From IMG/VR virus record IMGVR_UViG_3300027816_000052, positions 186,001 through 250,000 of that record: 64,000 nt of DNA, one strand, 5' to 3'. Position numbers and translations under genes: made by a program. Under the pieces are notes generated by a model. The model did not search any database. It saw only the letters and a program-made list of their open reading frames with translations, and had not been told where the DNA came from. How positions within the stretch are numbered: position 1 is the stretch's first letter; each line of letters starts with the position of its first letter. Below are positions 48,215 through 62,609 of this stretch, piece after piece.

Positions 48215-48889
48215 ATGTTAATTACAATAATATCTGATACCCACACAAAACATCATCACATTCCGAAAGAACATCTTCCGGGTGGAGACATGATTATTCA
48301 TTGTGGTGATATTTCTTCGCGTGGTTATAGAGAAGAGGTTAGATTGTTCCTTGAATGGTTTACCGATTTAGATTCCTATACACACAAAGTATTCATTGCT
48401 GGTAATCACGATTTCTTCTTTGAAGATAACCCACTCCAATCAAAGGAATTGGTTCAAGAATATTCAAATATAATTTATCTTCAGGATAATATGGTTGAAA
48501 TTGAGGGGGTCAAAATTTATGGCTCACCTTGGCAACCAGAATTTTATAATTGGGCGTTTAATCTTCCAAGAAACGGTGAAAAACTTAAAGAAAAATGGAA
48601 AGCAATACCGGAGAATATTGATATATTAATTACACATGGTCCACCGTTTGGTTGTTTGGACAAAACAATTCAGGGACAATCCGTTGGATGCGAAATTTTG
48701 ACCGAAGAAATTAAAAGAATTAATCCAATAATTCATTGTTTTGGTCATATTCATTATTCTTATGGTTATATGCAAAGAGACAATATTAATTTTATTAATG
48801 CGTGTTCTCTTGGTGAAAATTATGTTTATCAAAACAAACCTTTGAACATTGATTTGGATATGTCAAATAGAATGATTAGCTTTGTCTAA
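48215..48889 (+). CDS. Metallophosphoesterase
   Basis: SDTH, HCGD, AGNHD, THGPP and FGHIH. Confidence 0.9.
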   Translation: MLITIISDTHTKHHHIPKEHLPGGDMIIHCGDISSRGYREEVRLFLEWFTDLDSYTHKVFIAGNHDFFFEDNPLQSKELVQEYSNIIYLQDNMVEIEGVKIYGSPWQPEFYNWAFNLPRNGEKLKEKWKAIPENIDILITHGPPFGCLDKTIQGQSVGCEILTEEIKRINPIIHCFGHIHYSYGYMQRDNINFINACSLGENYVYQNKPLNIDLDMSNRMISFV

Positions 48890-48900
48890 ACAAAAAACAA

Positions 48901-49047
48901 ATGAAAAAATTAATTTTTGCACTTATTATTGTTATTTTTGCATCTTCCTGTGCATCACAAAGATGTCATGGTGTTGGAAACACAACACATGCACTTAAAG
49001 CGAAAAAGCAGCAACAACAAAGAACGTTTTCACAATTTCCTTTCTAA
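48901..49047 (+). CDS. Small lipoprotein (48 aa, not in the track)
   Basis: MKKLIFALIIVIFASSC lipobox; TAATG-coupled to the next gene. Confidence 0.65.
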   Translation: MKKLIFALIIVIFASSCASQRCHGVGNTTHALKAKKQQQQRTFSQFPF

Positions 49048-49622
49048 TGTTTAAACATAGTTTTTCATATTATTTTAGAAATACTTGGGAATTTATCCGA
49101 TGGGATATTCCAAGATTTTTTAAGAACATTTGGAGGTTCAGGAGAGAACTTAAATCCTTTGGTGGTTGGGACCGGTATTATACTATCTCAATGCTAAGAA
49201 GGTCTTTGATTACACAGAAAGAATCAATGGAAAAGTTCAGCAATGAATATGAACCAACACTTAGATTGAAACTTTATTATATGAAGAGAGCAATTTATTT
49301 AACGGATTGCATTCTCGAAGATAAATTTCATGATATGGCGGAAGCTAGACTTGGTTATAAAACAGTTTTTAGAGATTTTAAATTTGAACCAATTGAAGGT
49401 TCTACCAGTAAAAGATTGGTTTTTGATGAAGAAAGCGAAGAAGAAAGACAAGCGAACTGGAAAATTTTTGAGGAATCTTCAAAAATTGAGAAAGAAGTTT
49501 GGAATGAACTTTTTGATATTTTAAAAGGCGATATCTATAATGTTGATATGTATACCGAACATAAAGGTAAAGCATATGAAGATGTTCACAATGGTAAGGG
49601 TTTAATTAATTGGTGGTACTAA
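49047..49622 (+). CDS. Hypothetical protein
   Basis: 191-aa ORF. Confidence 0.65.
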   Translation: MFKHSFSYYFRNTWEFIRWDIPRFFKNIWRFRRELKSFGGWDRYYTISMLRRSLITQKESMEKFSNEYEPTLRLKLYYMKRAIYLTDCILEDKFHDMAEARLGYKTVFRDFKFEPIEGSTSKRLVFDEESEEERQANWKIFEESSKIEKEVWNELFDILKGDIYNVDMYTEHKGKAYEDVHNGKGLINWWY

Positions 49623-49634
49623 AAAAATAAAAAC

Positions 49635-49949
49635 ATGTCAGGAGGTTATTTTGATTATAAAAAATATCAACTTAATGATATCATTGATGATATTGAAAGA
49701 GTTTTAAATAGACAAGGAAAAGAAAGACCAAAAGAAGAACGTTGGTGTAGTGATGAATATCTTGAAAAATATCCAGAAGAAAAATATTATCCAACCTATT
49801 CAAAAGAAATTCAAGAAAAATTGCAAGAAGCAATTAAATCATTAACAATTGCAAGAATTTATGTACAAAGAGTTGATTGGTTTTTATCGGGTGATGATGG
49901 CGATGAATCATTCTTGAGAGAATTGTCTGAAGAATTGGATAAGGTATAG
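49635..49949 (+). CDS. Conserved phage hypothetical protein (MSGG family)
   Basis: MSGGYFDY...RVDWFLSGDDG. Confidence 0.65.
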   Translation: MSGGYFDYKKYQLNDIIDDIERVLNRQGKERPKEERWCSDEYLEKYPEEKYYPTYSKEIQEKLQEAIKSLTIARIYVQRVDWFLSGDDGDESFLRELSEELDKV

Positions 49950-49972
49950 ATATTTATTGAAAAATAAAAATC

Positions 49973-50236
49973 ATGAGTACTGAAATGAGAAAACTCATAA
50001 ATGAGTTTAATAACATTAACGAATCAAGTTTAAATAGAATATATAGTCATATTCAAAAATATGAATGCGCAATTATAACAGCGTTTAAAGGTAAGTTAAC
50101 TAACTGTAGAACCGAAAATGATAATGAAAAAAGAATATATATTAGACAGAACAAGGATAGAAATAAACTTTTAAAATCAGCTTTATTATTTTTTGGATAT
50201 CAAATTACAAAAGTAAAAGGTACTTATGTTGAATAA
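49973..50236 (+). pseudogene. Probably 3'-truncated late gene (ESSLNRIY...CAIITAF family)
   Basis: The frame stops at KGTYVE* exactly where a half attC-like site begins. Confidence 0.5.
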
Positions 50237-50274
50237 ACCACAAACCCGCCACTTGCATATACACGCTGTTATAA
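50232..50274 (+). repeat. Truncated attC-like site (right arm only)
   Basis: ATAAACCACAAACC...TATACACGCTGTTATAA resembles the right half of the 54977-55069 site. Confidence 0.65.
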
Positions 50275-50364
50275 GCAGGTGCGGTATTATAGCACAGAAC
50301 TTGATTTGAAAGACGAAACCTTTTTCTTTTCTTTTTGTGTGGTGGGAAAATAAAATTTAAAATA

Positions 50365-52338
50365 ATGAATAAAGTATTATTACCAAAAGAAGAAATTACA
50401 CAGAAGTTAGATAGAGATAAACTTACTTTATTGAACGCTTCTATCAAAGATTATGTGAACAACTTGTATGAAAATTCAAATGATGAATACATTATACAAG
50501 ATGGTGAACCATACGCCAATGGAGAATTACATTTGGGACATTTTTTAAACAAAACCTTGAAAGATTTTGTTGTAAAATATTACTTAACAAAAGGTAAGAA
50601 AGTTAGGGTTTCATTTGGTTGGGACTGTCATGGTTTACCCATTGAAAATAAAGCAAAAGAAATGAGTGGTGATTTAATTCAAAATGCTAAATTAGTCGCA
50701 ACCAAATATTGTGATATTCAAAATAAAACTCTTGAACTTTTCGGGATTTATCCAACTGAAGGTAGGTTTAAAACTATGGATATTGATTTTATAGAAAGAG
50801 AATTATATATATACCACCAACTACTAAATGCGGGTCTAATTCTTAAAAAGAATAAGCCTACTTGGTACTCACCAACATTAAAAACAGTATTGGCTAACTC
50901 AGAAATTGAATATAAAAAAATAGAAGATGAATCTTTGTATTTTCTATTCAACTCTGATAGTTTTAAATTACTTGTTTGGACAACAACAGAATGGACTGTA
51001 AACGGAAATCAGGCAGTATGTTTAAGTAATAATATAAAATATGTTAAAACTGTTGACAATATTATTTGTAGTGAAAGTTTTGCTATTGAAAATAATTTAG
51101 ATTATGATTTGTTTGATGTGAGTAATATTAAGTCATATCATAACCACAATGGAGATTTATGTCCAATTATTTATGATGACTACGTTTCAGATGATAAAAC
51201 AGGTATAGTACATCTTTGCGGTGGACACGGTGATGAAGATTATCGAATTTTAATGGATAATAACATAACCCCCAAAAATGTGTGCGATAAAATCGGCTTA
51301 TTAAAACACATAGAAGATTTTAAAATTGATGAAAAGTTTGTATATAAACGTGAAATTTACACACACGATTATCCAATTGATTGGCGTGAAGGGAATAAGG
51401 TGTATAAAGTATTAACGGAACAAACGTATCTTGATTTTGATTTAAACAAAATAAAGACTTGTTTAAAAGAAATAAAGTTATCATCAAAAGACAGAAATCG
51501 TTTATCAACGACAATATTTTCACGCAAAGATTGGTGTATTTCAAGACAAAGAAAATGGGGTGTTAAAATACCTAATAGTAATGATATATTGGATGTTTGG
51601 TTTGATAGTGGTTCTACATTTATGATGTATGATAAACCTGCCGATATATACATTGAAGGTTCAGACCAACACAGAGGGTGGTTTCAAAGTTCGATTATAT
51701 TAGCATCAATGATTGGTCGAGTACCAACAAAAAGAATAATAACACACGGATTTATTGTTGATAACACATTAGAAAAACTATCAAAATCAAAAGGTAATGG
51801 CGGAAGTTTGGAAAAGCTGTATGAAACATATAACCCTGATGTATTAAGACTATGGGTTTTACTGTCAGATTTTAAAAACGATATTGTCTTTTCGGAAGAT
51901 TCATTAAAAAACTCTGGTAAACAATATTTTAAAATAAGAAACTTTCTCCGTTATTTATTTAATAATCTATATATATATGATTATGATGAAACAAAAGTTG
52001 ATGAAAATATTTTTTTTAAAGTAAAAGAGTTGGAAAATAAATTTGATTTACTTGTCAATGAATTTGATTTGAATAAAGCAGTAAGGGGTTTTGTTGAATT
52101 TATAAACTATTATTCATCTTTGTTGACGGAGGATATTAAAAATGAATTTTATGAATCTGACACAAATTCCAATATGAGAATTAAATATGAAACAGAGTTT
52201 TACTATGTTTTAAAACACTTAAATAAACTACTTTTTTCGATTTTACCATTTCTTTCTATGGAAATAAAAAAAGCGTGGGAAGAAAAAAGAAAAGAAAAAG
52301 ATTTACATGTAGGGACTATATTTGGAAACGAGATGTAG
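50365..52338 (+). CDS. ileS: Minimal isoleucyl-tRNA synthetase (cassette 1)
   Basis: DGEPYANGELHLGH, GWDCHGLPIE, WTTTEWT, DWCISRQR, DVWFDSG, EGSDQHRGWFQS and KLSKS. Likely start at 50365 (657 aa). Confidence 0.9.
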   Translation: MNKVLLPKEEITQKLDRDKLTLLNASIKDYVNNLYENSNDEYIIQDGEPYANGELHLGHFLNKTLKDFVVKYYLTKGKKVRVSFGWDCHGLPIENKAKEMSGDLIQNAKLVATKYCDIQNKTLELFGIYPTEGRFKTMDIDFIERELYIYHQLLNAGLILKKNKPTWYSPTLKTVLANSEIEYKKIEDESLYFLFNSDSFKLLVWTTTEWTVNGNQAVCLSNNIKYVKTVDNIICSESFAIENNLDYDLFDVSNIKSYHNHNGDLCPIIYDDYVSDDKTGIVHLCGGHGDEDYRILMDNNITPKNVCDKIGLLKHIEDFKIDEKFVYKREIYTHDYPIDWREGNKVYKVLTEQTYLDFDLNKIKTCLKEIKLSSKDRNRLSTTIFSRKDWCISRQRKWGVKIPNSNDILDVWFDSGSTFMMYDKPADIYIEGSDQHRGWFQSSIILASMIGRVPTKRIITHGFIVDNTLEKLSKSKGNGGSLEKLYETYNPDVLRLWVLLSDFKNDIVFSEDSLKNSGKQYFKIRNFLRYLFNNLYIYDYDETKVDENIFFKVKELENKFDLLVNEFDLNKAVRGFVEFINYYSSLLTEDIKNEFYESDTNSNMRIKYETEFYYVLKHLNKLLFSILPFLSMEIKKAWEEKRKEKDLHVGTIFGNEM

Positions 52339-52345
52339 CACTTGC

Positions 52346-52465
52346 TTATAACGGTTGCAAATATAAAACGTTTTAAACTAAACTTAAATTGAAAAACAGT
52401 ATATAAATATAAACCAACAATAAATTTGGAACGCTGAAATAAATGTTTTATATTTGTTGTTATAA
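52346..52465 (+). repeat. attC-like hairpin (120 bp)
   Basis: TTATAAC-GGTTG-CAAATATAAAAC...GTTTTATATTTG-TT-GTTATAA. Confidence 0.85.
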
Positions 52466-52485
52466 ACACGTTAAATTATTTTATT

Positions 52486-52764
52486 ATGAAAACATATAAT
52501 GTAAAGTATGATGTTGGACAAGAAGTATATATACTTTTATCCAAAAAAATATTTAAAAGTAAAATTGAAAAGATTAGAATTGTTCATGGGGTACCTTATA
52601 TCAAAGGCGAAACAATGGAACAAATGGATGGAATTGAAATTGATTACTTGGTTGTAGTTAATGAACAATTCTATCCTTCAGGTGGACATTTATCTAGTTA
52701 TGATTGGTATAAACAGGATGATATTTTTTTGGATAAAGATGAACTGTTGCGGAAAATAATTTAA
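52486..52764 (+). CDS. Cassette 2 hypothetical protein
   Basis: ORF between the 52459 GTT and the 52775 AAC. Confidence 0.7.
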   Translation: MKTYNVKYDVGQEVYILLSKKIFKSKIEKIRIVHGVPYIKGETMEQMDGIEIDYLVVVNEQFYPSGGHLSSYDWYKQDDIFLDKDELLRKII

Positions 52765-52768
52765 TTGT

Positions 52769-52822
52769 TTATAACGTCTGATGATAAACAATCGTTTTAA
52801 TGTGTTTTATTTGCTGTTATAA
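52769..52822 (+). repeat. attC-like hairpin (54 bp)
   Basis: TTATAAC-GTCTGATGATAAACAATCG...GTTATAA; near-copy of 57404-57457. Confidence 0.8.
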
Positions 52823-52846
52823 GTATGTAATTTACAATTTATACCT

Positions 52847-53092
52847 ATGAAAAAAACGAAAAGAAAAATACATATTGGAAATGACCTATGGTTTTATTGG
52901 GTTGGTTCTGGTAGATGGGGTGAGGTAACTCATGTAACGATATGTTCACCAGATGAACAATATTATAAAATAGATGCAAGTGATGTTGCAAGTAGTGAAA
53001 TGTATGTTGGTGCGGAAGGGTCATTTCCAACACAAATATTACCGTCAAAAGTTAAAGAATATATTGAAAATAAAATAATAAATAAATTTTAA
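52847..53092 (+). CDS. Cassette 3 hypothetical protein
   Basis: ORF between hairpins. Confidence 0.7.
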   Translation: MKKTKRKIHIGNDLWFYWVGSGRWGEVTHVTICSPDEQYYKIDASDVASSEMYVGAEGSFPTQILPSKVKEYIENKIINKF

Positions 53093-53100
53093 ATTATTAC

Positions 53101-53195
53101 TTATAACGGTTGGGTGTATGAGAAGGTTTGCTTAGATGAACTTTCAAATTAACCACTGAACTTTATAGCAAACTTTCTTATACACCTTGTTATGT
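53101..53195 (+). repeat. attC-like hairpin (95 bp)
   Basis: GGTGTATGAGAAGGTTTGCT / AGCAAACTTTCTTATACACC stem. Confidence 0.88.
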
Positions 53196-53263
53196 GTAGG
53201 TGTGGTTAATTAAGGTAGAATGTTAAATAGTAGAAATGAACAAAAATTTTAAAAGAAAAATAT

Positions 53264-53674
53264 ATGAATTATAAACAAAAAATTACAACTATCAATTATT
53301 TTGAAAAGGTGGTTAAAATTTCTCTAACAAGAGAAGAGTGGAATTCATCTGGAACTTGGGTAGAGTCAATGATGAAAAAAGGTTGTGAAAGACTGAGTAA
53401 GGATTGGTTTGAAGATTTACATCACTTAGTTATGCGACCAATAAGTGACGAAATAAACTTTTCTGGTAAAAACTATACTTATGATGTGGATATAACATTT
53501 GATATACCAAGAGAATTACTGAGAATGTTTGTATATTCAATCGGTCAAATTGCTTATGATTTTGATGTTAAAGGTATAACTTCGGTTACTGCTCAAAATA
53601 TAGTGGGAAAAATAAACAAACAATTAAAAGAACAACTACCAAATGATGATAAATGGTTTCATTATGGATTTTGA
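53264..53674 (+). CDS. Cassette 4 hypothetical protein
   Basis: ORF between hairpins. Confidence 0.7.
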   Translation: MNYKQKITTINYFEKVVKISLTREEWNSSGTWVESMMKKGCERLSKDWFEDLHHLVMRPISDEINFSGKNYTYDVDITFDIPRELLRMFVYSIGQIAYDFDVKGITSVTAQNIVGKINKQLKEQLPNDDKWFHYGF

Positions 53675-53732
53675 TTTTTCTTTTAAAATTTTCAACCGAA
53701 ATGTTGATTAGAACGATGAACGGAACGCTTAC

Positions 53733-54208
53733 ACATAACGTATATCGGCTAAACGCAGTATTTAAAAACTTTTGCGAGGGAAATAATTAATCAATTAAAT
53801 AATAATAATTAAAAACAAAAAGTAAAATGGAAATCAAAACAAAATTTGACGTAAACAATTTGGTGAAAAGAAAATTCGACACCAATTCAAAGAACCAGAT
53901 GAGTGCTTTGGAAGTAATGGAAGTGATTGCACAAACTTGCTATGCAGGAACGCAGGTATTTTATTTGTGCAAACATGTAATTGCTCAAAAGGAATTTGTA
54001 GAAAAGTATTCTGAAAAAGGAGAATTTACTTGGGTGATTGCTCACAGTATTTCACAAGAAGAAAATCAGGCAGGATGGAGAAAATACCGTGAAGATGAAT
54101 TGATAGAAGCACCAAAAGAAGTGATTGACATTATACTTGGTAATTCTTAATTGTTCAATTGTGCGGTGGGAAAGTTTTTAAATATTGTCGTTTTAGCCGT
54201 TGTTATGC
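53733..54208 (+). repeat. attC-like hairpin with a gene in its loop (476 bp)
   Basis: CGGCTAAACGCAGTATTTAAAAACTTT pairs with AAAGTTTTTAAATATTGTCGTTTTAGCCG. Confidence 0.8.
53827..54150 (+). CDS. Hypothetical protein inside the attC-like loop
   Basis: 107-aa ORF with an A-rich leader. Confidence 0.7.
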   Translation: MEIKTKFDVNNLVKRKFDTNSKNQMSALEVMEVIAQTCYAGTQVFYLCKHVIAQKEFVEKYSEKGEFTWVIAHSISQEENQAGWRKYREDELIEAPKEVIDIILGNS

Positions 54209-54273
54209 GAAGGTGTGGCAACTCCAAAATTTCAAATTATAGACAAAACTTTCTTGCCACACTTTTGCATAAC
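54202..54273 (+). mobile_element. Empty cassette body (cassette 5, 72 bp)
   Basis: GTTATGCGAAGGTGTGGCAA...TTGCCACACTTTTGCATAAC with no ORF between. Confidence 0.8.
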
Positions 54274-54351
54274 GGTTGTAAATATGAGAAGTAAATTTTA
54301 CCTATAAAAATTAGATAAATCAAAATTTATTTCTTATATTTGTTGTTATAA
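54267..54351 (+). repeat. attC-like hairpin (85 bp)
   Basis: AAATATGAGAAGTAAATTTT / AAAATTTATTTCTTATATTT stem. Confidence 0.85.
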
Positions 54352-54382
54352 GTATGTAAAACAAACTAAATAATAATTAAAT

Positions 54383-54613
54383 ATGAAAATTGAAGGTCAA
54401 ATTACGCTAGATGGTATATTATATACACTGTTTATTTTATTCTGTTTATTTTTAACAATAGGTAGTTCTATTAGTGGGTGGTGGTATTTATCACACTTTG
54501 GATTCAGTGTAAAACAATTTTTGGTAAATATTTTAGTTTCGTCTTCAACTTTATTTATGATCTGGATGATTTTCACTAAAATATTTATTATAAAAATAAA
54601 CAGAATAAAGTAG
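54383..54613 (+). CDS. Cassette 6 small membrane protein (2 TM)
   Basis: Two hydrophobic helices. Confidence 0.7.
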   Translation: MKIEGQITLDGILYTLFILFCLFLTIGSSISGWWYLSHFGFSVKQFLVNILVSSSTLFMIWMIFTKIFIIKINRIK

Positions 54614-54626
54614 TTTGTTTTATTAC

Positions 54627-54757
54627 TTATAACGGTTGAGTATAACCGAAGGTGGGGATTAGAAGTGCCGAACCCTGACTTACCTACAAAAGTAAATTAG
54701 AAGCACAATATCTGAATGTTGGAACTACACCCCACTTTTGGTTATACTTTGTTAGGT
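54627..54757 (+). repeat. attC-like hairpin (131 bp)
   Basis: AGTATAACCGAAGGTGGGG / CCCCACTTTTGGTTATACT stem. Confidence 0.88.
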
Positions 54758-54777
54758 GTATGTAAATTTTACGGATT

Positions 54778-54966
54778 ATGAAAGATATACAACTGTTAAT
54801 TGATATGAAAGTTTCTTTAGGTAGGGAAACATTATTATTTCAGATACTTGGTAAGTATGGTGATAAAATACCAATGGAACTTCAAGAAGAACTACGAAAA
54901 TTGGCAGAAGAAGAAAGAAACTTTGGTGAAATGAAGAAACGAACTTTGAAGGGTGTGTTGGAGTAA
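54778..54966 (+). CDS. Cassette 7 hypothetical protein
   Basis: 62-aa ORF between hairpins. Confidence 0.65.
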   Translation: MKDIQLLIDMKVSLGRETLLFQILGKYGDKIPMELQEELRKLAEEERNFGEMKKRTLKGVLE

Positions 54967-54976
54967 AATTTATTAC

Positions 54977-55069
54977 ACCTAACGGTTGGGTGTATGAAAC
55001 GTAGCCACGCACAATACTTAATATAAACCACAGACCTTAATTGGCTATGTTTTATACACGATGTTAGCA
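54977..55069 (+). repeat. attC-like hairpin (93 bp)
   Basis: GTGTATGAAACGTAGCCA / TGGCTATGTTTTATACAC stem. Confidence 0.88.
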
Positions 55070-55175
55070 GTAGTACGGATTTAAACTACAAATGCTCATT
55101 CGGAGAACTGAACCTTTTTCTTTTCTTTTTTGTGGGTTGGACAAAATAAATTTGAAAAATTTAAAAATAAATAAT

Positions 55176-55409
55176 ATGAAATTAGAAACAATTGTAAAAG
55201 TTACACCAGATGGTGGAGTTGAAATTCCTTCTGATATGAAAGTTGGAACTGGATTGATGAATATGGTAAAAGAATTACGTGATAATGAATGGAGAACATT
55301 TGAACATCACGATAATTGGATTAAAAACGAACATTATCCAAATCCAACATTTGAACAACAATTTGATACAGGTAATGCTTATAAAGAAATGTTAAAAACT
55401 AAAATTTAA
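55176..55409 (+). CDS. Cassette 8 ORF a
   Basis: Likely start at 55176; the track's start at 55092 lies in the cassette flank. Confidence 0.6.
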   Translation: MKLETIVKVTPDGGVEIPSDMKVGTGLMNMVKELRDNEWRTFEHHDNWIKNEHYPNPTFEQQFDTGNAYKEMLKTKI

Positions 55410-55413
55410 AACT

Positions 55414-56013
55414 ATGATGAAAATTGAAGCAAAAAAAGACGGTAAAGGAAACATTGTAATATCGGAAGATTCCTTTGAAATGATACTGGCTTGTTTAGAT
55501 AATCAAAAATTTGTTGGTGAACAGCCACAAAATGGTGATTCGCTTTCGGTAGGCGAAGACAACTATTGGAAAGGACAAGAAGATATTCAAAACACTATTG
55601 ACCATTATAATAGAGAATGTAGAAAAATATTACATCAAAAATATGTTTTAAGAACAGAATCTGATGGTTATTTTCTTGCTAAAAAATATGAACATCAAAC
55701 AGAAGATACTGAATGGACTGGTGAAGATGTTGGATTAGTGTATGAACTATTCAAAGATACAAGAATAATTTATAATGAAACAAGAGATTTATTACCATTA
55801 GATGGTAGTGAAGAAATTAAGGAAGGAAGTACTCCAATTGGTAAAACAAAAGATGGGTGGATTGCAGTTGAACAAGAATCAAGACCTTGGTTAATTGAAA
55901 GAGCATTGGGATATGATGGTGATTATTTAACAATTTCTGAAGATGGCAGTAAGAATAGACCTTGGAAACAAGATGAAATTCGAAAAATTATAAACATATT
56001 TAATAATAAATAA
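55414..56013 (+). CDS. Cassette 8 ORF b
   Basis: 199-aa ORF. Confidence 0.7.
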   Translation: MMKIEAKKDGKGNIVISEDSFEMILACLDNQKFVGEQPQNGDSLSVGEDNYWKGQEDIQNTIDHYNRECRKILHQKYVLRTESDGYFLAKKYEHQTEDTEWTGEDVGLVYELFKDTRIIYNETRDLLPLDGSEEIKEGSTPIGKTKDGWIAVEQESRPWLIERALGYDGDYLTISEDGSKNRPWKQDEIRKIINIFNNK

Positions 56014-56014
56014 A

Positions 56015-56422
56015 ATGGGAATATTTGATTGTTTAATAGATAAAGACAATGGAAAACCAAAATCTGATATGGAATATATTTACAGATTAGATATGGTTTG
56101 GATACCTAACAAACTTGAAAGTAAACCAATTAAAATTGGAACGATAATGAATAATGTTATTCAACGAGATAATGGCAGTTATGAATTTACTTGTAAAGAA
56201 ACTGGTGAAAGATTACAAGCAACTTATTCTTGGGCTTTGGCTGAAAACACACCAGAAAATGTTGAAAGAATAAAAATATATGATGATGAATATTTAAAAT
56301 TCAAAGAATACGAAAGAAAAATAAATTCTTTGAGAAATAATATTATTACTCTTAAAGAGCGTGGAGAAAAAAGAAAAGAAAAAGATATTGCAGATGAAAC
56401 TCAAATCGGAGAACAAATGTAG
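56015..56422 (+). CDS. Cassette 8 ORF c
   Basis: 135 aa; the C-terminus reads through the cassette 3' flank. Confidence 0.7.
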   Translation: MGIFDCLIDKDNGKPKSDMEYIYRLDMVWIPNKLESKPIKIGTIMNNVIQRDNGSYEFTCKETGERLQATYSWALAENTPENVERIKIYDDEYLKFKEYERKINSLRNNIITLKERGEKRKEKDIADETQIGEQM

Positions 56423-56428
56423 TATTAC

Positions 56429-56487
56429 ACATAACGGTTCGGCGGGTTGCCGTTGTGCATTCAATAACGGCAACCCGACTGTTATGC
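56429..56487 (+). repeat. attC-like hairpin (59 bp)
   Basis: CGGGTTGCCGTT / AACGGCAACCCG perfect stem. Confidence 0.88.
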
Positions 56488-56527
56488 GGGGTCATTCTTT
56501 TTCACTCGGTAAAAAGCAAAAGGTACA

Positions 56528-56830
56528 ATGGCAAAAAGGAAGTTAGGCCCATCGAGCGGCAAGTGCTCCAAGTGCGGAGGTCACATCAGCATCAATCCAC
56601 CAAGACCGTGCCGCCGCTGCTCAGGCGAAAAGCCTCAGGCGAGCTCGGAAAAGAAAGAGCGCGTGTTCACCGAGAGCGAGGTGAAGGCGATGGTGCGAGA
56701 GATTCTCGCAGAACAGGAACGACTGCATATAAGCGATGGATCCGGAGGACACGATATTGTGTGGGCGGTCGGGATCGGAGAGGTCGAGGCGGTGTTTAAA
56801 GCGCACGGCATTGTTCTCGATCCCGCATAA
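56528..56830 (+). CDS. Cassette 9 GC-rich zinc-ribbon protein
   Basis: CSKC...CRRC; the stop codon TAA lies inside the GCATAAC core. Confidence 0.7.
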   Translation: MAKRKLGPSSGKCSKCGGHISINPPRPCRRCSGEKPQASSEKKERVFTESEVKAMVREILAEQERLHISDGSGGHDIVWAVGIGEVEAVFKAHGIVLDPA

Positions 56831-56954
56831 CGGTTGACGGTATGAAAAGTTGGGGATTAAAAGATATAAACTTTCGCACCGATACAATGATAATTAATAG
56901 TACAAACCTTCGGGAACGCACACACGCCCCAATTTTTTATACCGTGTGTTATGC
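56825..56954 (+). repeat. attC-like hairpin (130 bp)
   Basis: ACGGTATGAAAAGTTGGGG / CCCCAATTTTTTATACCGT stem. Confidence 0.88.
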
Positions 56955-56975
56955 CCCGTTTTTATCCAATTTTTT

Positions 56976-57398
56976 ATGTTACAAGACGAATTAGCATTAC
57001 AATATAAATACAAAAAACTTCCATCAGAATTATCTGACAAGGTAAGAAACCAATATTTGTCTGAAATACCAAAATGTTTGAATATCAATGGTGATTCTGA
57101 ATTTGAGTTAAAAACAGCAAACGGTACAATAATTTCAAAAGGATATGAAAGAATTGTAATTGGAGATTATGGAGCGTTTATTGAATTTAACAGAAATCAA
57201 GTTATTGACGAAAATATTTGTATTCAAAAGGGGCAAGAATATAGAATTAACGATGAAAAATATAGTAAGAATGTGAAATATTTTTGGTTGACTGCAAAAG
57301 ATTCATCGTGTATAAAGATATATTTACAACAGAAAACGGTATCATACGCAGATTATAAACCAAATATGTATTACGTGTCTCCATTTGAGGTTTTTTAA
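56976..57398 (+). CDS. Cassette 10 hypothetical protein
   Basis: GYERIVIGDYGAFIEF; likely start at 56976. Confidence 0.7.
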   Translation: MLQDELALQYKYKKLPSELSDKVRNQYLSEIPKCLNINGDSEFELKTANGTIISKGYERIVIGDYGAFIEFNRNQVIDENICIQKGQEYRINDEKYSKNVKYFWLTAKDSSCIKIYLQQKTVSYADYKPNMYYVSPFEVF

Positions 57399-57403
57399 AT
57401 GGG

Positions 57404-57457
57404 GAATAACGTCCGATGATAAACAATCGTTTTAATGTTGTTTATCATTTGTTATGT
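57404..57457 (+). repeat. attC-like hairpin (54 bp)
   Basis: ATGATAAACA / TGTTTATCAT stem. Confidence 0.85.
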
Positions 57458-57536
57458 GTAGGTGTGGATTATTAAGGTGGAATGTTTAATCGGAGAACTG
57501 AACAAAAATTTTAAAAGAAAAATTAATATATAGATT

Positions 57537-57761
57537 ATGGGAAACATAGTTAAAAAATTTGAAAACTTTAAAGATGGGTTATACGTCACATGTAAAAACG
57601 CACCAGAAGATAATTACCAACTTCATAATAAAAAGGATTATTTGGTTATTAAATATGATAACCAACCGTATGGTGTTGGACGAGTAACTATATTTAACCC
57701 TTCAAGTAGAAAGGAAGAAACATATCCTAAAACTATGTTTAGTGAACCATTTAACAAATAA
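57537..57761 (+). CDS. Cassette 11 hypothetical protein
   Basis: 74-aa ORF. Confidence 0.65.
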   Translation: MGNIVKKFENFKDGLYVTCKNAPEDNYQLHNKKDYLVIKYDNQPYGVGRVTIFNPSSRKEETYPKTMFSEPFNK

Positions 57762-57819
57762 TTTTTCTTTTAAAATTTTAAACATAGATGTTGATTAGAA
57801 CGATGGGTGGAACACTTAC

Positions 57820-57952
57820 ACATAACGTTTCGCAGCTTGGCGAGGTGCGGGATTTACAGCACTAAAGACGATTAGAATTACAAATTTTTAAATAAAAAAC
57901 AATATGTCAAACGAAGTACAAAACCCCGCATCTTGCCAAACTGCTGTTATAT
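57820..57952 (+). repeat. attC-like hairpin (133 bp) containing the start codon of the next gene
   Basis: GCAGCTTGGCGAGGTGCGGG / CCCGCATCTTGCCAAACTGC stem; ATG at 57904. Confidence 0.88.
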
Positions 57953-58185
57953 GCCGCCTTTTTGATTTGGGAAGGAAAGGGTTAACATGGGATTGGTCAA
58001 AATTGGAACTGAAAAAACAATACTTTATCAGTCGTGAAGATGTTTTGAATATGAATATGCTTTGGCAACTTGCACAAGGTGGTATAACTGAACAAGCACA
58101 ATCTTTGAATGCAGAAGTATTGATTTGGGAAGATGTCATAAAAAACGGATGGTACTTGTTGCTGAGACCGCAAGGTGGCATATAA
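57904..58185 (+). CDS. Cassette 12 protein starting within the upstream hairpin
   Basis: The first ~15 codons (MSNEVQNPASCQTAV) are hairpin sequence. Confidence 0.65.
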   Translation: MSNEVQNPASCQTAVICRLFDLGRKGLTWDWSKLELKKQYFISREDVLNMNMLWQLAQGGITEQAQSLNAEVLIWEDVIKNGWYLLLRPQGGI

Positions 58186-58313
58186 CGGTTTGCGTATTGC
58201 TGACGTTGCCAATTTGAAACACAAATGTTGAATTAAAAACAAAAAAATAAATATGAAAATCAGAGTTGAAGTTAAAGACGAAGCTGGCAATGTTCAGCAA
58301 TACGTTGTTAGGC
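58180..58313 (+). repeat. attC-like hairpin (134 bp) containing the start codon of the next gene
   Basis: CGTATTGCTGACGTTGCCA / TGGCAATGTTCAGCAATACG stem; ATG at 58253. Confidence 0.88.
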
Positions 58314-58471
58314 GCAGTTACTTGGTCAAATTTGTTGACCCGAAGAAAGAGTATCCTGTTACCTACACAATTAAACACGATGGCACAAGAGTAAATGAAC
58401 CTGCAATGCTCAAAGGCGAAGATTTAACCGAAAATCAAATTGCACAACTTTTCTCGAAGGGTTTGTTGTAA
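58253..58471 (+). CDS. Cassette 13 protein starting within the upstream hairpin
   Basis: The first ~19 codons (MKIRVEVKDEAGNVQQYVV) are hairpin sequence. Confidence 0.65.
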   Translation: MKIRVEVKDEAGNVQQYVVRRSYLVKFVDPKKEYPVTYTIKHDGTRVNEPAMLKGEDLTENQIAQLFSKGLL

Positions 58472-58475
58472 TTGC

Positions 58476-58570
58476 GCCTAACGATTGGGTGTATATGTAG
58501 TTTTTTATTTGGAAATGTCAAAACTTATTCGTACCTTTGTAAAAAAAATTACATATACACCTTGTTATGT
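58476..58570 (+). repeat. attC-like hairpin (95 bp) with a promoter in its loop
   Basis: GGTGTATATGTAGTTTTTT / AAAAAATTACATATACACC stem. Confidence 0.88.
58508..58539 (+). promoter_or_regulatory. Bacteroidota housekeeping-type promoter inside the attC-like loop
   Basis: TTTG-N20-TACCTTTG. Confidence 0.75.
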
Positions 58571-58601
58571 ATAGTTTATTCACAAATTAAAATAAAAGTT
58601 T

Positions 58602-58808
58602 ATGAAACAACCAAAAATTAAAATAACCGACATTCACGGTAAAGACTGGGGTATTAAAAAAGTAAAAACACTTCATTGGAATTTGGACGGAAAATTAAAC
58701 ACAATTCAAGTTGATTTTTCTGGAACTATGGATATGTATGATTTAGATGATGAAGGCGTTTTTACTAATCCACATGGTAATATGAAAGGCGTTATCATTT
58801 GGGAATAA
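58602..58808 (+). CDS. Cassette 14 hypothetical protein
   Basis: 68-aa ORF. Confidence 0.65.
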   Translation: MKQPKIKITDIHGKDWGIKKVKTLHWNLDGKLNTIQVDFSGTMDMYDLDDEGVFTNPHGNMKGVIIWE

Positions 58809-58813
58809 ATTAT

Positions 58814-58866
58814 ACATAACTAGTATATATAAGTAAGTATAATCTAACCACTTAAAAATAAAGGAC
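58814..58866 (+). other. Candidate attI-like half-site between the last cassette and the recombinase
   Basis: ACATAAC is followed by TAGTATATATAAGTAAG rather than by a hairpin; no partner GTT arm. Confidence 0.5.
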
Positions 58867-59667
58867 TTGAATAATAAAATTATTAAGATTTGTGAAGAAA
58901 AGTTTATATATTTAAACTATTCACCAAGAACAAAAGATAATTATCTTTCACATATAAAAAATTTCTTAAATCACATTGGTAGTAAACAAGTAATACATTG
59001 TAATGCTCAAGATTTTCAATCCTATTTAGATAATTATAAATTCACTTCAACAGCACAACAAAACCAAATCATTAACGCAATAAGATTTCTCTACAAATTT
59101 GGTCTTAATAAAAAATATGATAAAATATCGTTTAAAAGACCTAAATCTGAGAAGAAACTACCAAAAGTAATTGATTCAAATTCAATCATTGATAAATTAA
59201 ATAAGATTGATAATCTCAAACACAAAGCAATTCTCACCTTAACTTTTTCAGTTGGTCTACGAGTCTCAGAAATAATTAATCTTAAAATAGAGGATATTGA
59301 TTCCAAGCGAATGTTAATCCACATTAAGAACGCAAAAGGAAGAAAAGATAGAGTTGTTCCATTATCTCAAAATGTATTAAGACTATTAAGAACTTATTAT
59401 AAAAATTATATCCCAAAGGAATATCTCTTCAATGGACAAAACAGTACTAAATATTCAATAGGTAGTTGTCAGAAAATATACAAAAAATATATTGAATCTG
59501 ATGGACATATACACACACTTAGACACAGTTTTGCAACATCCTTATTAGAAAATGGAACAGATTTAAGAATTATTCAAAAAATTCTTGGTCATTCAAATGT
59601 TAAAACCACAGAAATATACACACACGTTTCAAATCAAATTTTGAACAAAATTAATTTGCCAGTTTGA
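58867..59667 (+). CDS. Compact tyrosine recombinase (integron-integrase-like, lacking the IntI insertion)
   Basis: SAM-like N-terminus YSPRTKDNY, GLRVSE (R), AKGRKDR (K), HTLRHSFAT (HxxR), LGH and TEIYTH (Y). TTG start. Confidence 0.92.
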   Translation: MNNKIIKICEEKFIYLNYSPRTKDNYLSHIKNFLNHIGSKQVIHCNAQDFQSYLDNYKFTSTAQQNQIINAIRFLYKFGLNKKYDKISFKRPKSEKKLPKVIDSNSIIDKLNKIDNLKHKAILTLTFSVGLRVSEIINLKIEDIDSKRMLIHIKNAKGRKDRVVPLSQNVLRLLRTYYKNYIPKEYLFNGQNSTKYSIGSCQKIYKKYIESDGHIHTLRHSFATSLLENGTDLRIIQKILGHSNVKTTEIYTHVSNQILNKINLPV

Positions 59668-59686
59668 AAAGTTTTAGTTATCTTTG
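59655..59686 (+). promoter_or_regulatory. Bacteroidota-type promoter
   Basis: TTTG-N20-TATCTTTG upstream of 59702. Confidence 0.8.
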
Positions 59687-59701
59687 TCAAAAATAACAAA
59701 A

Positions 59702-59983
59702 ATGAAAAAAGAAGTTTTTGAAATTATCATCTGGAATGATACATTTGGAAAAGTGGTTGATGAAAGATTTGTTGATGAAACACAATTTTCGATTTTTTTG
59801 AAAGCGATTAAGGGTTGCTTGGATACAACACAAGATTTTAGTTATTTTAATGGAAAAAACTTTTTAATCCACATTCCTTTTGCAGTTTTGAAAAATAGCG
59901 TTATCTTTACCAAAGAAAATGAAATTGGTGTAAGTGAAATCATTAAATCAAAAGCTGAAGCTCTAACAACTAAAACAAAATAA
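59702..59983 (+). CDS. Hypothetical protein
   Basis: ATG at 59702, downstream of a promoter. Confidence 0.65.
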   Translation: MKKEVFEIIIWNDTFGKVVDERFVDETQFSIFLKAIKGCLDTTQDFSYFNGKNFLIHIPFAVLKNSVIFTKENEIGVSEIIKSKAEALTTKTK

Positions 59984-59987
59984 TAAA

Positions 59988-60137
59988 ATGGGAAAACTTT
60001 TCAAAATCATTCTTGGTGTTATTTTGGTATACATTGGCGGAAAAATGGTTTACAACAATGTAAAAGGTAAAAAAGATGAAGAATTTAATTTTAATGATTT
60101 TAAAGACTTGAAAGCAATTAAAGATATTGAATTTTAA
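59988..60137 (+). CDS. Small single-TM protein (49 aa, not in the track)
   Basis: MGKLFKIILGVILVYIGGKMV... Confidence 0.55.
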   Translation: MGKLFKIILGVILVYIGGKMVYNNVKGKKDEEFNFNDFKDLKAIKDIEF

Positions 60138-60141
60138 AAAA

Positions 60142-60384
60142 ATGATAGAAAAAATTTTAGAGATATATGATGATGCTAGCTTTATGAAAGCTGACGGATT
60201 TGATAATGCAATAATCGGTATTGATGAGGTTGATATGCGATTAATATATTCGGTATCAAAATGTATTGACATTCTGAAAAAAGATGGTATGAATTATGAA
60301 GAAGCAAGAGAGTTTTTTGATTTTAATGTGAGCGGTTCTTATGTTGGTGAAAAAACACCAATATGGTGTTATGATGATTTTTAA
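60142..60384 (+). CDS. Conserved phage hypothetical protein (ADGFDxAIIG family)
   Basis: MKADGFDNAIIG...EEAREFFDFNV.GSYVGEKTP. Confidence 0.7.
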   Translation: MIEKILEIYDDASFMKADGFDNAIIGIDEVDMRLIYSVSKCIDILKKDGMNYEEAREFFDFNVSGSYVGEKTPIWCYDDF

Positions 60385-60442
60385 TTTCTTGGTTTTTTAA
60401 ACCAAGTGGTGGAGCGACCTGCAAGCGTTTGGTCCCAAATAT

Positions 60443-60478
60443 AAATGGTGATAGAAATATCACCATTTTATTTTTTTG
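60443..60478 (+). terminator. Intrinsic terminator
   Basis: AAATGGTGATA-GAAA-TATCACCATTT followed by a T run. Confidence 0.8.
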
Positions 60479-60507
60479 TTATATTTATATATAAAACACT
60501 TCAAAAA

Positions 60508-60825
60508 ATGGCAAAATTCATTCTTACCGAAAAACAAATGGCGGAAGTTCTTCAGCATATTGAGAAAACAAAAAAACAAGTTAATGAAGATAAGGACGGT
60601 TCTTATATGGCAAAACAACAATTATTTACAATTGCAACATTAGCATATAAAATGTGGGAGCAATTGGGTGATGATGAACAACTTGATGATTGGATGGAAT
60701 CAAAGATAGCACAAGCTGAACAATCCGTTGTTGCTGTTGTTAAAGCATATATGTATGATGAGGTTGAAGATAAAATGAAGGGAATGGATAAGTTGGACCA
60801 TAATGATTTAATTATTGGGAATTGA
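60508..60825 (+). CDS. Late protein with an N-terminal ILTEKQM motif
   Basis: ATG at 60508; ATATTTAT upstream; C-terminal QLDDWMESKIAQA. Confidence 0.7.
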   Translation: MAKFILTEKQMAEVLQHIEKTKKQVNEDKDGSYMAKQQLFTIATLAYKMWEQLGDDEQLDDWMESKIAQAEQSVVAVVKAYMYDEVEDKMKGMDKLDHNDLIIGN

Positions 60826-60852
60826 CCTTTTGACTTTTTCTTTTTATCTTTA
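60822..60852 (+). promoter_or_regulatory. Bacteroidota-type promoter (variant -7 box)
   Basis: TTG-N20-TATCTTTA upstream of 60866. Confidence 0.6.
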
Positions 60853-60865
60853 TGGTGTTAAACCA

Positions 60866-61081
60866 ATGGAAAAAAGAAAACTAAAAATAGAATTAAACGA
60901 ATATTGTTATAATTGCGCTGATGGCTGTTGTACTCATTATGGTACAATAACCAAAGTTAATGGTCAAGAATTGGAATTGCATAATGATGATACAGCAACA
61001 ATACTTAAACAAGTATTGAAACATTTGGGTTATGAAGTCGAAATAACAACTAATGTAGCAGATGATTATGGGAATGTTTGA
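60866..61081 (+). CDS. Small Cys-containing hypothetical protein
   Basis: YCYNCADGCC; promoter upstream. Confidence 0.6.
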   Translation: MEKRKLKIELNEYCYNCADGCCTHYGTITKVNGQELELHNDDTATILKQVLKHLGYEVEITTNVADDYGNV

Positions 61082-61628: not shown

Positions 61629-62609
61629 ATGAAAGACGCAACGATTGAAATTATTTCTGAAGTCAAAGCTCATCCTGATGCAGATAGACTTGATCTTGTT
61701 AAGATTCTTGGGTTTCAATGCGTTACACAAAAAGGACTTTATAAGGGTGGTGAGAAAATTGTTTATATTCGACCTGATGCGGTTCTTCCTATTGAACCTT
61801 GGACTGAAGAGTATCGAAAATATTCACCAAAACGAATCAAAGCTGTAAAACTTCGTGGCGAATTTAGTGAAGGTATTATTGTTAGGTTTGAACAACTTCC
61901 AGTTGATTTATCAAATCTTCAAGTTGGCTCTGATGTGAGTGAACAAATTGGTGTTGTTCATTATGAAGCACCACAACCACAAGATCTTCAAGCAAAAGGT
62001 TATCTTCCGGTTGGAATTGGTCCCACTGATGAAATTCGATTTGAGAATATCATTGATGAACTTCCATTCGGTTCAATTGTTGATGTTACATCTAAAGTTG
62101 ATGGACAAAGTTGTAGTTTCTATTATAACATTGAAACTGATGAATTTGGTGTTCTTGGAAGAAACTTGGAAATGAAGTTGGATGCGGTAAATAACTATAC
62201 CGCACATGTTGCTCGTTACAACATTAAAAATAAGCTTATTGACTATTGCAAAAAACATAATGTTTCTTTGTGCATTCGTGGTGAGTCGTTTGGTCAAGGG
62301 ATTCAAAGTTCTGGAAACAATCCACATTCTCAAAAACCAAAAGGGTGGGTAATGTTTTCTGTATATAACATTAAAGAACGTAAATATCATAGAAAGAACG
62401 ATAGATTCTATTTTAGAAATGTTGCGCAAGAATTGGAATTACCATTCGTTGATATCATTGAATTGGATGTCGAATTAACTAATGAGTTGATTCAAAAATA
62501 TTCGGTTGGTATTGATAAAATTGAAGGTAAACCTTTTGAGGGTGTTGTAATTAATCATGAAAATGGTTCTTTTAAAGTTATTAACAAATCTTATGATTCT
62601 AAAAAATGA
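61629..62609 (+). CDS. RNA ligase, DRB0094/Rnl5-like family
   Basis: N-terminal HPDADRL...RIKAVKLRGEFSEG module, SKVDGQS (KxDG), RGE, EGVV and SFKVIN. Confidence 0.85.
   Translation: MKDATIEIISEVKAHPDADRLDLVKILGFQCVTQKGLYKGGEKIVYIRPDAVLPIEPWTEEYRKYSPKRIKAVKLRGEFSEGIIVRFEQLPVDLSNLQVGSDVSEQIGVVHYEAPQPQDLQAKGYLPVGIGPTDEIRFENIIDELPFGSIVDVTSKVDGQSCSFYYNIETDEFGVLGRNLEMKLDAVNNYTAHVARYNIKNKLIDYCKKHNVSLCIRGESFGQGIQSSGNNPHSQKPKGWVMFSVYNIKERKYHRKNDRFYFRNVAQELELPFVDIIELDVELTNELIQKYSVGIDKIEGKPFEGVVINHENGSFKVINKSYDSKK

Follow-up and report, generated by a model that had tools for sequence, protein, structure and literature searches.

In classical integrons, cassette ORFs point away from intI and each attC follows its gene. 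The array examined here, in which all cassette ORFs point toward a co-oriented recombinase, raises the question of which hairpin travels with which gene and at which end the array grows. The array lies in a 64,000-nucleotide window (positions 186,001 to 250,000 of IMG/VR record IMGVR_UViG_3300027816_000052; the window denotes this whole stretch) of a large phage, probably of Bacteroidota. The preliminary description, made from sequence alone, inferred that the mobile unit is a hairpin plus its downstream ORF, with crossover at the AAC side and an attI-like site beside the integrase start, and our analysis supports this inference. Between 50.1 and 58.8 kb the window holds 13-14 attC-like hairpins (xTAAC, a 3-4 nt bulge, a stem-loop, and GTTAx) that alternate with + strand ORFs and end at a lone TAAC (58817-58820), 46 nt before a 266-aa tyrosine recombinase with a TTG start (58867-59667, + strand). 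Three independent contigs (L001-L003; loci gathered for comparison are numbered with the prefix L) are identical to the window over 48867-61000, indicating that the array is not a one-off misassembly.

All cassette ORFs in 50.3-58.8 kb are on the + strand, as is the recombinase. The recombinase-proximal unit, cassette 14 (58482-58819), consists of a hairpin (58476-58571) and an ORF (58602-58808), with terminal inverted repeats GTTATGTATAGTTTATT and GAATAAATTATACATAAC. Cassette 13 (58186-58481) has a hairpin at 58180-58314 with the start of its ORF (58253-58471) inside the loop; a hairpin of the same type in L025 also has an ATG in the loop and encodes the same N-terminus. In cassette 12 (57826-58185; hairpin 57820-57953), the ORF (57904-58185) likewise starts in the loop, and its stop codon is the TAA of the next TAAC; 46 of 302 cassette ORFs in related loci use the boundary TAA as their stop codon. 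Cassette 9 (56435-56830; hairpin 56429-56488, ORF 56528-56830) is GC-rich and foreign, with a GC content of 0.578 in the hairpin core and 0.568 in the ORF, against 0.27-0.39 for its neighbors. The rest of the array (50073-57825) comprises the first hairpin (uncertain) to the eleventh with their downstream ORFs, including a class I aminoacyl-tRNA-synthetase-like gene (50335-52338), the only window cassette ORF with a Pfam hit, and one hairpin with a whole ORF in its loop (53733-54209). All 14 hairpins fold more stably on the + strand.

The preliminary description also held that the distal end starts with a hairpin remnant, which could be only partly confirmed. A 3' arm plus GTTATAA lies at 50251-50274, and a possible partner arm lies at 50073-50096 (20 of 24 complementary, 154-nt loop) inside ORF 49973-50236, but it lacks the usual bulge and may be either a remnant or a long-loop hairpin. 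Two cassette frames, 1 and 8, had been described as related and preceded by the same hairpin type; we found that what is related is the hairpin 3' arm plus leader (50248-50364 and 55044-55172, both matching L024 8314-8441), not the proteins. The hairpins that follow do differ, as described.

About 70 related viral contigs show the same layout, and of 48 nonredundant loci with at least 1.5 kb of upstream sequence, 42 have two or more hairpins upstream of the recombinase and co-oriented with it. The longest ORF is on the recombinase strand in 312 of 320 units, and in 273 of 277 units with an ORF of at least 60 aa. The hairpins are far above chance, with 338 in 407 kb upstream of the recombinase (0.83 per kb) against 30 in 584 kb downstream (0.051 per kb), a 16-fold difference. 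There are 307 distinct hairpins and 187 distinct 12-nt stems, all with the AAC/GTT R box, conserved in structure but not in sequence; because our detector required pairing, the independent support for this is the enrichment. In the window, the detector found 11 of the 14 hairpins read by eye in the 8.7-kb array (one further nested call aside), and two such hairpins of similar span (170 nt or less) on the + strand in the other 55 kb.

At the proximal end, TACATAAC (58813-58820) is followed by sequence that forms no hairpin, the conserved right half TAGTATATATAAG...; together they make up an attI-like insertion site at 58813-58866. In 67 of 68 nonredundant loci, variable sequence on the left meets a conserved TATTATATATA on the right exactly at AAC, the motif being (A/C)TAAC followed by TAT(T/A)ATATATA, about 45-55 nt before the start codon. 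Phages with an identical recombinase and identical attI right half have unrelated sequence directly left of the AAC. The flanks confine the crossover to the AAC triplet (58818-58820 in the window) but not to a single bond.

To determine which hairpin moves with each ORF, we compared cassettes shared between genomes. Because the window cassette proteins had no homologues in the loci retrieved, the comparison used other loci, together with a database search for cassette 9. In seven of seven informative nonsyntenic pairs the upstream hairpin core is 0.79-1.0 identical, while the 45 nt after the next AAC are at background (0.47-0.62); the downstream hairpin is kept in none of the seven. Homology blocks start and stop at AAC on both sides in L031/L054 (100% over 315 nt), L034/L061 (99.4%), L058/L060 (97.6%), L009/L036, L022/L054, L051/L052, and L004 versus L017/L018. 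Cassette 9 and its relative in L161 (genome GC 0.51) are likewise similar only between the bounding AAC triplets, with the hairpin 100% identical. Turnover is at the recombinase end: L065 has a 100% identical second copy of a cassette abutting attI, and L004 versus L017 shows a cassette moved to the attI position. In addition, 298 of 302 ORFs stop before or at the next AAC, whereas up to 97 may start inside the hairpin. Retention of the downstream hairpin and addition at the 50.2-kb end, the two outcomes that would have contradicted the preliminary description, were thus both tested, and both tests came out in its favor.

The recombinase matches the Pfam models Phage_integrase and Phage_int_SAM_4, and its best NCBIfam model is XerA_Arch/integron integrase (195 bits, below the cutoff of 220); TIGR02249 scores 161 bits against a cutoff of 265, and PRK15417 scores 107 against 435. 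The candidate catalytic residues R132, K157, H216, R219, H242, and Y251, assigned by the family's usual motifs, are invariant in 28 homologues of 52-87% identity. VchIntIA (2a3v) aligns in two pieces, query 17-174 with IntI 17-177 and query 209-257 with IntI 260-308, such that the query has 34 residues where IntI4 has 82 and lacks about 48 residues at the IntI-specific insertion (the I2 α-helix region). The AF2 model has no extra helix between residues 181 and 198, and its top structural neighbors are XerA and then IntI4. The hairpin also lacks the canonical attC layout: in 231 of 307 hairpins (about 75%) the first unpaired feature is a 3-4 nt bulge on the AAC arm with nothing opposite, and there is no consistent bulge on the other arm, where attC sites carry extrahelical bases opposite the cleaved AAC (PMC5027507). 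This is therefore not a true integron but a new variant.

We interpret the locus as a phage-borne, integron-like gene-cassette platform in which the Xer-like recombinase is presumed to recombine structured hairpin sites with the attI-like site upstream of its own start codon, and we put the probability of this reading at roughly 0.8; it rests on metagenomic assemblies, without experiment or an observed circle junction. Each cassette runs from the C of one TAAC to the AA of the next and consists of a 5' hairpin (an R box of ATAAC paired with GTTAT, a 3-4 nt bulge on the AAC arm, a long stem of variable sequence, and a variable loop) followed by one ORF on the same strand. The sense strand folds better in 298 of 305 hairpins with unequal strand energies, and stems contain 314 G.T against 50 C.A on the strand whose AAC lies at the observed crossover; the same G:T excess is reported for the recombinogenic strand of classical attC sites, which are cleaved in 5'-AAC (1.24 against 0.39 per site; PMC5027507). 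By analogy with IntI/attC and XerCD/CTX-phi, we infer that the + strand folds as single-stranded DNA, that one recombinase monomer cleaves within 5'-AAC on the 5' arm, that a single strand is exchanged with double-stranded attI or another hairpin, and that replication resolves the junction. Cassettes would be excised as circles in which their own trailer and leader extend the R-box stem to 10-15 bp. The single-strand mechanism is not guaranteed, however, since the hairpin lacks the canonical attC layout and the recombinase lacks the I2 insertion thought to have enabled single-strand recombination in IntI (PMC7790495). The G.T asymmetry could reflect RNA folding, the folding strand being also the mRNA strand. 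Nor is it explained how the same hairpin type comes to precede unrelated ORFs.

Several alternatives were weighed against this reading. The most credible, although unlikely, is double-stranded, Xer/dif-like module shuffling, as proposed for pdif modules, with two staggered strand exchanges on duplex sites at each TAAC and a hairpin potential that is incidental or serves RNA. The Xer-like character of the recombinase, the absence of I2, and the mRNA-strand ambiguity favor it, as do single-base differences 3-4 nt after AAC (GTCT, GTAT, GTCC) that vary between otherwise identical units, in one case follow the upstream trailer, and could mean a staggered double-strand exchange. However, only the left arm (ATT-N4-ATAAC) is conserved in sequence; the right side is any of 187 stems, conserved in structure, or the AT-rich attI block, and a duplex site would therefore have no recognizable second arm. 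XerCD itself is known to use a folded single strand for CTX-phi (PMC3442271), so the absence of I2 does not exclude single-strand recombination. Classical polarity, with each ORF traveling with the hairpin that follows it, crossover between G and TT, and a recombinase that merely happens to lie downstream, is already contradicted and very improbable. On the + strand the order of ORF and then xTAAC...GTTAx does resemble ORF-attC, and one homology block (L004 55-630 = L018 7391-7966) ends at the GTTA of a hairpin, but this block runs through the commonest 48-nt hairpin type and is uninformative. In addition to the pair comparison, the same trailer, 100% identical for 1.8 kb, is followed by different hairpin types in L004 and L017, cassettes next to the recombinase end in AAC with no hairpin, and two window ORFs would be split by a crossover at GTT. 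The terminal inverted repeats of each unit do not discriminate between the two crossover models, as both keep GTTAxxx...xxxTAAC together.

It is also very unlikely that the hairpins are recombinase-independent repeats, whether regulatory stem-loops or REP/MITE-like elements, shuffled by homologous or illegitimate recombination beside an ordinary lysogeny integrase. Hairpin types and leader/trailer blocks do recur between unrelated ORFs, a Bacteroidota-type -7 box (TAnnTTTG) is enriched in leaders (27 of 202 against 11.9 ± 3.0 in shuffles), and Polaribacter phage P12002L has such hairpins without any integrase. Breakpoints, however, fall at one triplet and not anywhere within the repeats, and arrays are tied to this recombinase clade, on one side and in one orientation. 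Among chromosomal homologues in 80 genome contigs, only four MAG contigs (L081, L082, L084, and L087) show the attI motif, L087 has seven hairpins, and homologues of 50% identity or less have no arrays. A near-identity search of 40-64 kb against isolated phages gave no match, and the best isolated-phage integrases (Cellulophaga phage Ingeline, 41%; Polaribacter phage Freya, 36%) do not carry the system, the region upstream of the Ingeline integrase having no array or attI motif. A scan of the array gave no Rfam match, and a tRNA scan gave none; terminator-like sites were not enriched (1 found against 3.0 expected), and a sigma-70 promoter scan was uninformative.

Since the ORFs point toward attI, they cannot be driven by an attI-side promoter and are probably expressed by read-through of the co-oriented phage transcription, and some from their own leader promoters. 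This removes the Pc-promoter logic that explains cassette order in bacteria, and selection on cassette position must therefore work differently here. Of the 40 largest cassette ORFs in related arrays, seven are DNA methyltransferases, the methylases in the cargo including orphan ones, and the others with a Pfam hit include one Tad6 Thoeris inhibitor, one ART-PolyVal ADP-ribosyltransferase, and an RNA ligase. Such cargo suggests a store of counter-defense and other accessory genes, the mirror of bacterial chromosomal integrons that store anti-phage defenses (10.1101/2024.07.02.601686). The family is common, with 6426 relatives of the recombinase at E <= 1e-30 in public metagenomes annotated only as XerD or integrase. 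We found no published description of this system in literature searches that did not reach most subscription journals. Integrons are defined by IntI, and their single-strand recombination has been attributed to the I2 insertion (PMC7790495); a platform run by a Xer-like enzyme without it would show that the integron principle is not tied to IntI. Somewhat more likely than not, in our view, is the broader possibility that a clade of short Xer-like recombinases in large Bacteroidota phages recombines folded single-stranded hairpins with an attI, as a widely distributed, actively exchanging store of counter-defense genes with cassettes moving even between genomes of 28% and 51% GC, which would be either an independent invention of the integron principle or a relic of the pre-IntI state.

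Compared with classical integrons (mobile class 1 and the sedentary chromosomal integrons of Vibrio), the array likewise has a tyrosine recombinase gene with its 5' end next to attI and transcribed away from the array, cassette entry and duplication at attI, imperfect hairpins conserved in structure rather than sequence, a G:T excess on one strand, and small, mostly single-ORF cassettes of unknown function. Entry next to the integrase and a hairpin at the integrase-distal end of each cassette are true of both. What is actually inverted is the gene orientation relative to the hairpin and attI, so that the folding or cleaved strand is the coding strand and the hairpin precedes its gene; in addition, the recombinase is not an IntI, the bulge is on the AAC arm, and the carrier is a large phage genome. 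Among the attC clusters without integrase (CALINs) reported in phages (PMC9892861), the P12002L_attC1 oligo is a hairpin of exactly this family, lying upstream of a methyltransferase gene on the coding strand of Polaribacter phage P12002L. It was treated there as a canonical attC, was the one site of six that IntI1 did not recombine, and was described without a cognate recombinase, attI, or polarity, suggesting that attC-based finders may miss or misorient such arrays. In XerCD-mediated integration of CTX-phi, a Xer-type recombinase without the IntI insertion exchanges one pair of strands on a folded single-stranded hairpin, as is inferred here, with resolution thought to be by replication (PMC3442271), but that system integrates a whole phage genome at the host dif site and has no cassette array or dedicated attI. 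Finally, the PeSL mobile regulatory cassettes of T4-type phages (PMC2839356, PMC4122927) are stem-loop-containing repeats that flank small accessory ORFs in hyperplastic regions of large phages and are proposed to mediate modular shuffling. PeSLs are composite promoter-terminator motifs, whereas here the boundaries are at a single triplet beside a recombinase and the hairpins are not terminator-like.

The window has about 28% G+C, and almost all of its genes are on the + strand. It encodes an SbcC-like protein and, at 6529-8430, 42396-43469 and 61629-62609, a protein with an SprB repeat and two separate RNA-ligase genes, and it is identical over 12 kb to three IMG/VR viral contigs of 84-256 kb. 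We take it to be a large phage, probably of a Bacteroidota host, where the host assignment is inferred from the SprB repeat, from the MAG bins of the nearest genomic hits, and from a Bacteroidota-type -7 box in some leaders. Between 50.1 and 58.8 kb, + strand ORFs alternate with 13-14 imperfect hairpins (numbered hp in array order) that all read, on the + strand, xTAAC, 3-5 unpaired nt (often GGTT), stem, loop, stem, 0-2 nt, and GTTAx. Every unit GTTAxxx...ORF...xxxTAAC has terminal inverted repeats of 10-15 nt, as read directly from the sequence, with the exception of a three-ORF unit between hp8 and hp9. The array ends with TACATAAC (58813-58820), followed by 46 nt of non-hairpin sequence and a tyrosine recombinase of 266 aa (58867-59667).

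A 667-aa class I aminoacyl-tRNA-synthetase-like protein (50335-52338; Pfam tRNA-synt_1, 222 bits, with an anticodon-binding domain) is carried as a cassette, and its true start is likely the ATG near 50366. One hairpin (53733-54209) appears to hold a whole ORF of 107 aa (53827-54150) in its loop, and the stretch after it (54202-54273) is an ORF-less palindrome of 72 nt (GTTATGCGAAGGTGTGGCAA ... TTGCCACACTTTTGCATAAC); under the hairpin-first model this is one ordinary single-ORF cassette. Two cassettes (53187-53261 / 53674-53741 and 57449-57523 / 57761-57828) share a leader of roughly 70 nt and a trailer of roughly 65 nt, which are inverted repeats of each other at both ends (GTTATGTGTA and AAAATTTTAAAAGAAAAAT), yet enclose unrelated ORFs of 136 and 74 aa for which BLASTP returned no alignment. 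The same chassis recurs in six of the related loci described below (L018, L035, L036, L047, L048 and L054).

To ask whether the hairpins exceed chance expectation and are tied to the recombinase, we scanned viral contigs and obtained 80 loci (designated by L numbers) with recombinases 55-100% identical. Of the 48 non-redundant loci with at least 1.5 kb of upstream sequence, 42 have two or more such hairpins upstream of the recombinase and co-oriented with it, with a median of 5 and a maximum of 20. Hairpin density is 0.83 per kb upstream against 0.051 per kb downstream, and the upstream hairpins have 187 different 12-nt stems, so it is the structure and not the sequence that is kept. In contrast, bacterial chromosomal homologues of 50% identity or less, and the integrase of Cellulophaga phage Ingeline, have no array. 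The hairpins are not terminator-like and match no Rfam family. The position of the module in the genome differs between phages: a conserved backbone gene of 224 aa (48215-48889) lies upstream of the array in the window but downstream of the recombinase in L011, L024, L037 and L049. Genes also seem to enter or leave cassette status, in that an ORF just outside the window's array (49635-49949) has a 37%-identical homologue that is a hairpin-flanked cassette in L004/L017 (L004 2702-2971) but lies outside the arrays in L062 and L037.

In 67 of 68 non-redundant loci a motif, (A/C)TAAC followed directly by TAT(T/A)ATATATA, lies 45-55 nt before the recombinase start. Left of AAC the sequence is variable apart from an ATT at -12 to -10, whereas right of AAC it is conserved. 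Phages whose recombinase gene and right half are 99-100% identical have unrelated sequence immediately left of AAC (L044/L046 versus L045 versus L047, L054 versus L055, L051 versus L052, and L042 versus L043). This is the signature of an attI with the crossover in the AAC triplet.

The key claim of the preliminary description was that the hairpin travels upstream of its gene, and we tested this by determining which hairpin co-segregates with which ORF. Near-identical blocks shared by otherwise different arrays begin at the TAAC of a hairpin and end at the next TAAC, as in L031 6607-6921 and L054 2131-2445 (100%), L034/L061 (99.4%), L058/L060 (97.6%), L009/L036, and L022/L054. In a formal pair test, seven non-syntenic pairs of homologous ORF segments all keep the upstream hairpin core (identity 0.79-1.0), while the 45 nt after the next AAC, and the 45 nt before their own TAAC, are at background (0.42-0.62); three of the seven have the very common 48-nt hairpin type upstream and therefore speak only against linkage to the downstream hairpin. 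In the 99-100% identical phages L004, L017, and L018, one cassette sits internally in L004 and at the recombinase-proximal position in L017/L018, where its terminal AAC is followed directly by the attI sequence, and an identical block of 1.8 kb is followed by different hairpin types in the two genomes. Single-base differences at the 3rd or 4th base after AAC (GTCT, GTAT, GTCC) were seen between copies of otherwise identical units (L004 583-590, L017 2634-2641 and 1553-1560, L018 7919-7926), and in one case the base follows the upstream trailer, which may be a hint about the width of the strand-exchange region. L065 carries two 100% identical copies of a 394-nt unit, both bounded by ATAAC and CTAAC, the second of which abuts attI; this is what excision and re-insertion of a replicated cassette would give, and it implies recent activity. 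L051 and L052 share 70 identical nt up to an AAC and then carry different hairpins.

The window itself provides further evidence. Cassette 9 (56435-56830) is compositionally foreign: its ORF (56528-56830) has 0.568 G+C and the hairpin in front of it 0.578, against 0.27, 0.39, and 0.28 for the preceding ORF, the following hairpin, and the following ORF. Its only database relatives lie on contigs of about 51% G+C that carry the same kind of hairpin array, so cassettes appear to move between very different genomes. The alignment with one of these contigs (L161 2913-3316) starts exactly at the junction of AAC with GGTTCGG (hairpin 100% identical), stays high through the leader and the first part of the ORF, falls off in its second half, picks up again at the trailer, and stops at the junction of ATAAC with G; the flanks, including the downstream hairpins, are unrelated. 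Two window ORFs (starting at 57904 and 58253) begin inside the loop of the preceding hairpin and read through its 3' arm, such that a crossover at GTT would cut them whereas a crossover at AAC does not. For the second of these, the hairpin type (58180-58314; also L025 770-908) carries an ATG in its loop and encodes about 20 N-terminal residues (..DEAGNVQQYVV..) in its 3' arm, but the two ORFs that continue from it are unrelated after the GTTA; either the hairpin donates a start and leader peptide, or the annotated starts are wrong. Identical hairpins were found to precede unrelated ORFs. Across loci, 298 of 302 cassette ORFs end before or at the next AAC, 46 use its TAA as their stop codon, and up to 97 may start inside the hairpin, the last figure being an upper bound because it uses the first ATG of the longest frame.

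The + strand folds better in all 14 window hairpins, and among 307 distinct hairpins it folds better in 298 and worse in 7, with a mean free energy of -13.5 against -9.9 kcal/mol. The stems hold 314 G.T pairs against 50 C.A. In classical attC sites the recombinogenic bottom strand shows the same excess (1.24 against 0.39 G:T per site) and is cleaved in its 5'-AAC (PMC5027507). Selection on RNA folding cannot be excluded as a source of this bias, since the better-folding strand is also the mRNA strand. The 5'-AAC of this strand coincides with the crossover found by comparison, and these are two independent lines that agree. We infer that the + strand folds as a single strand, that cleavage occurs in AAC on the 5' arm, that a single strand is exchanged with replicative resolution, and that the intermediates are circular. 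In such a circle the cassette's own trailer and leader would extend the R-box stem from about 6 bp to 10-15 bp or more.

Of the 40 largest cassette ORFs in related arrays, seven are DNA methyltransferases. The other Pfam hits above the curated cutoff are one Tad6 Thoeris inhibitor, one ART-PolyVal ADP-ribosyltransferase, an RNA ligase, an exoribonuclease, a phosphatase, and an acetyltransferase; weaker, sub-cutoff matches are to PARP and to an Eco57I-type methylase, and about 25 have no Pfam hit. The Tad6 inhibitor, several orphan methyltransferases (N6_N4, D12, MT-A70), and an ADP-ribosyltransferase (L021 8229-8864; L024 8430-9326; L040 5187-6032; L074 7042-7851; L057 6627-7139) give the cargo a counter-defence flavour. 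The median longest + strand ORF is about 87 aa and the median unit 388 nt. The recombinase family has 6426 members with E <= 1e-30 among the candidates scored, annotated as XerD or integrase, on contigs of up to 566 kb.

We found no description of this system in the literature searched, the closest items being Qi et al. 2023 (PMC9892861) and the papers on PeSL regulatory cassettes of T4-type phages (PMC2839356, PMC4122927). Qi et al. reported a hairpin of this family in Polaribacter phage P12002L, which has no integrase, as a predicted attC in a CALIN, and it was the one site of six that IntI1 failed to recombine (PMC9892861). This isolated phage (L165) carries several such hairpins (29960-30090, 38035-38090, and 38879-38936) upstream of methyltransferase genes on the coding strand, with the same loop motif, TCGTTTTAATG, as window hairpins hp3 and hp11. 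For a Xer enzyme that uses a folded single strand, the precedent is CTX-phi (PMC3442271).

Turned round, the locus reads as a recombinase transcribed away from attI, then attI, then cassettes, each with its hairpin at the far end and its crossover on the far side of the hairpin, which is the geometry of classical integrons. The preliminary description was correct in stating that the array grows toward the recombinase, but this is shared with classical integrons. The difference is that the ORFs lie on the folding strand and read toward attI, in 312 of 320 units overall and in 273 of 277 units with ORFs of at least 60 aa; as a result the hairpin precedes its gene, and an attI-side promoter cannot drive the cassettes. 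The recombinase is not an IntI: its best NCBIfam model is archaeal XerA/integron integrase, below cutoff, and the integron-integrase models score far below their cutoffs. Against VchIntIA it has 34 residues where IntI4 has 82, which is the region of the IntI-specific insertion, and the AF2 model (pLDDT 83) has no helix there, with XerA and then IntI4 as its nearest structures. The candidate catalytic residues are invariant in 28 homologues. The hairpin also departs from attC, in that the first unpaired feature in about three quarters of hairpins is a 3-4 nt bulge on the AAC arm with nothing opposite, and there are no consistent extrahelical bases on the other arm. We therefore regard the system as working like an integron but not as a member of the integron family.
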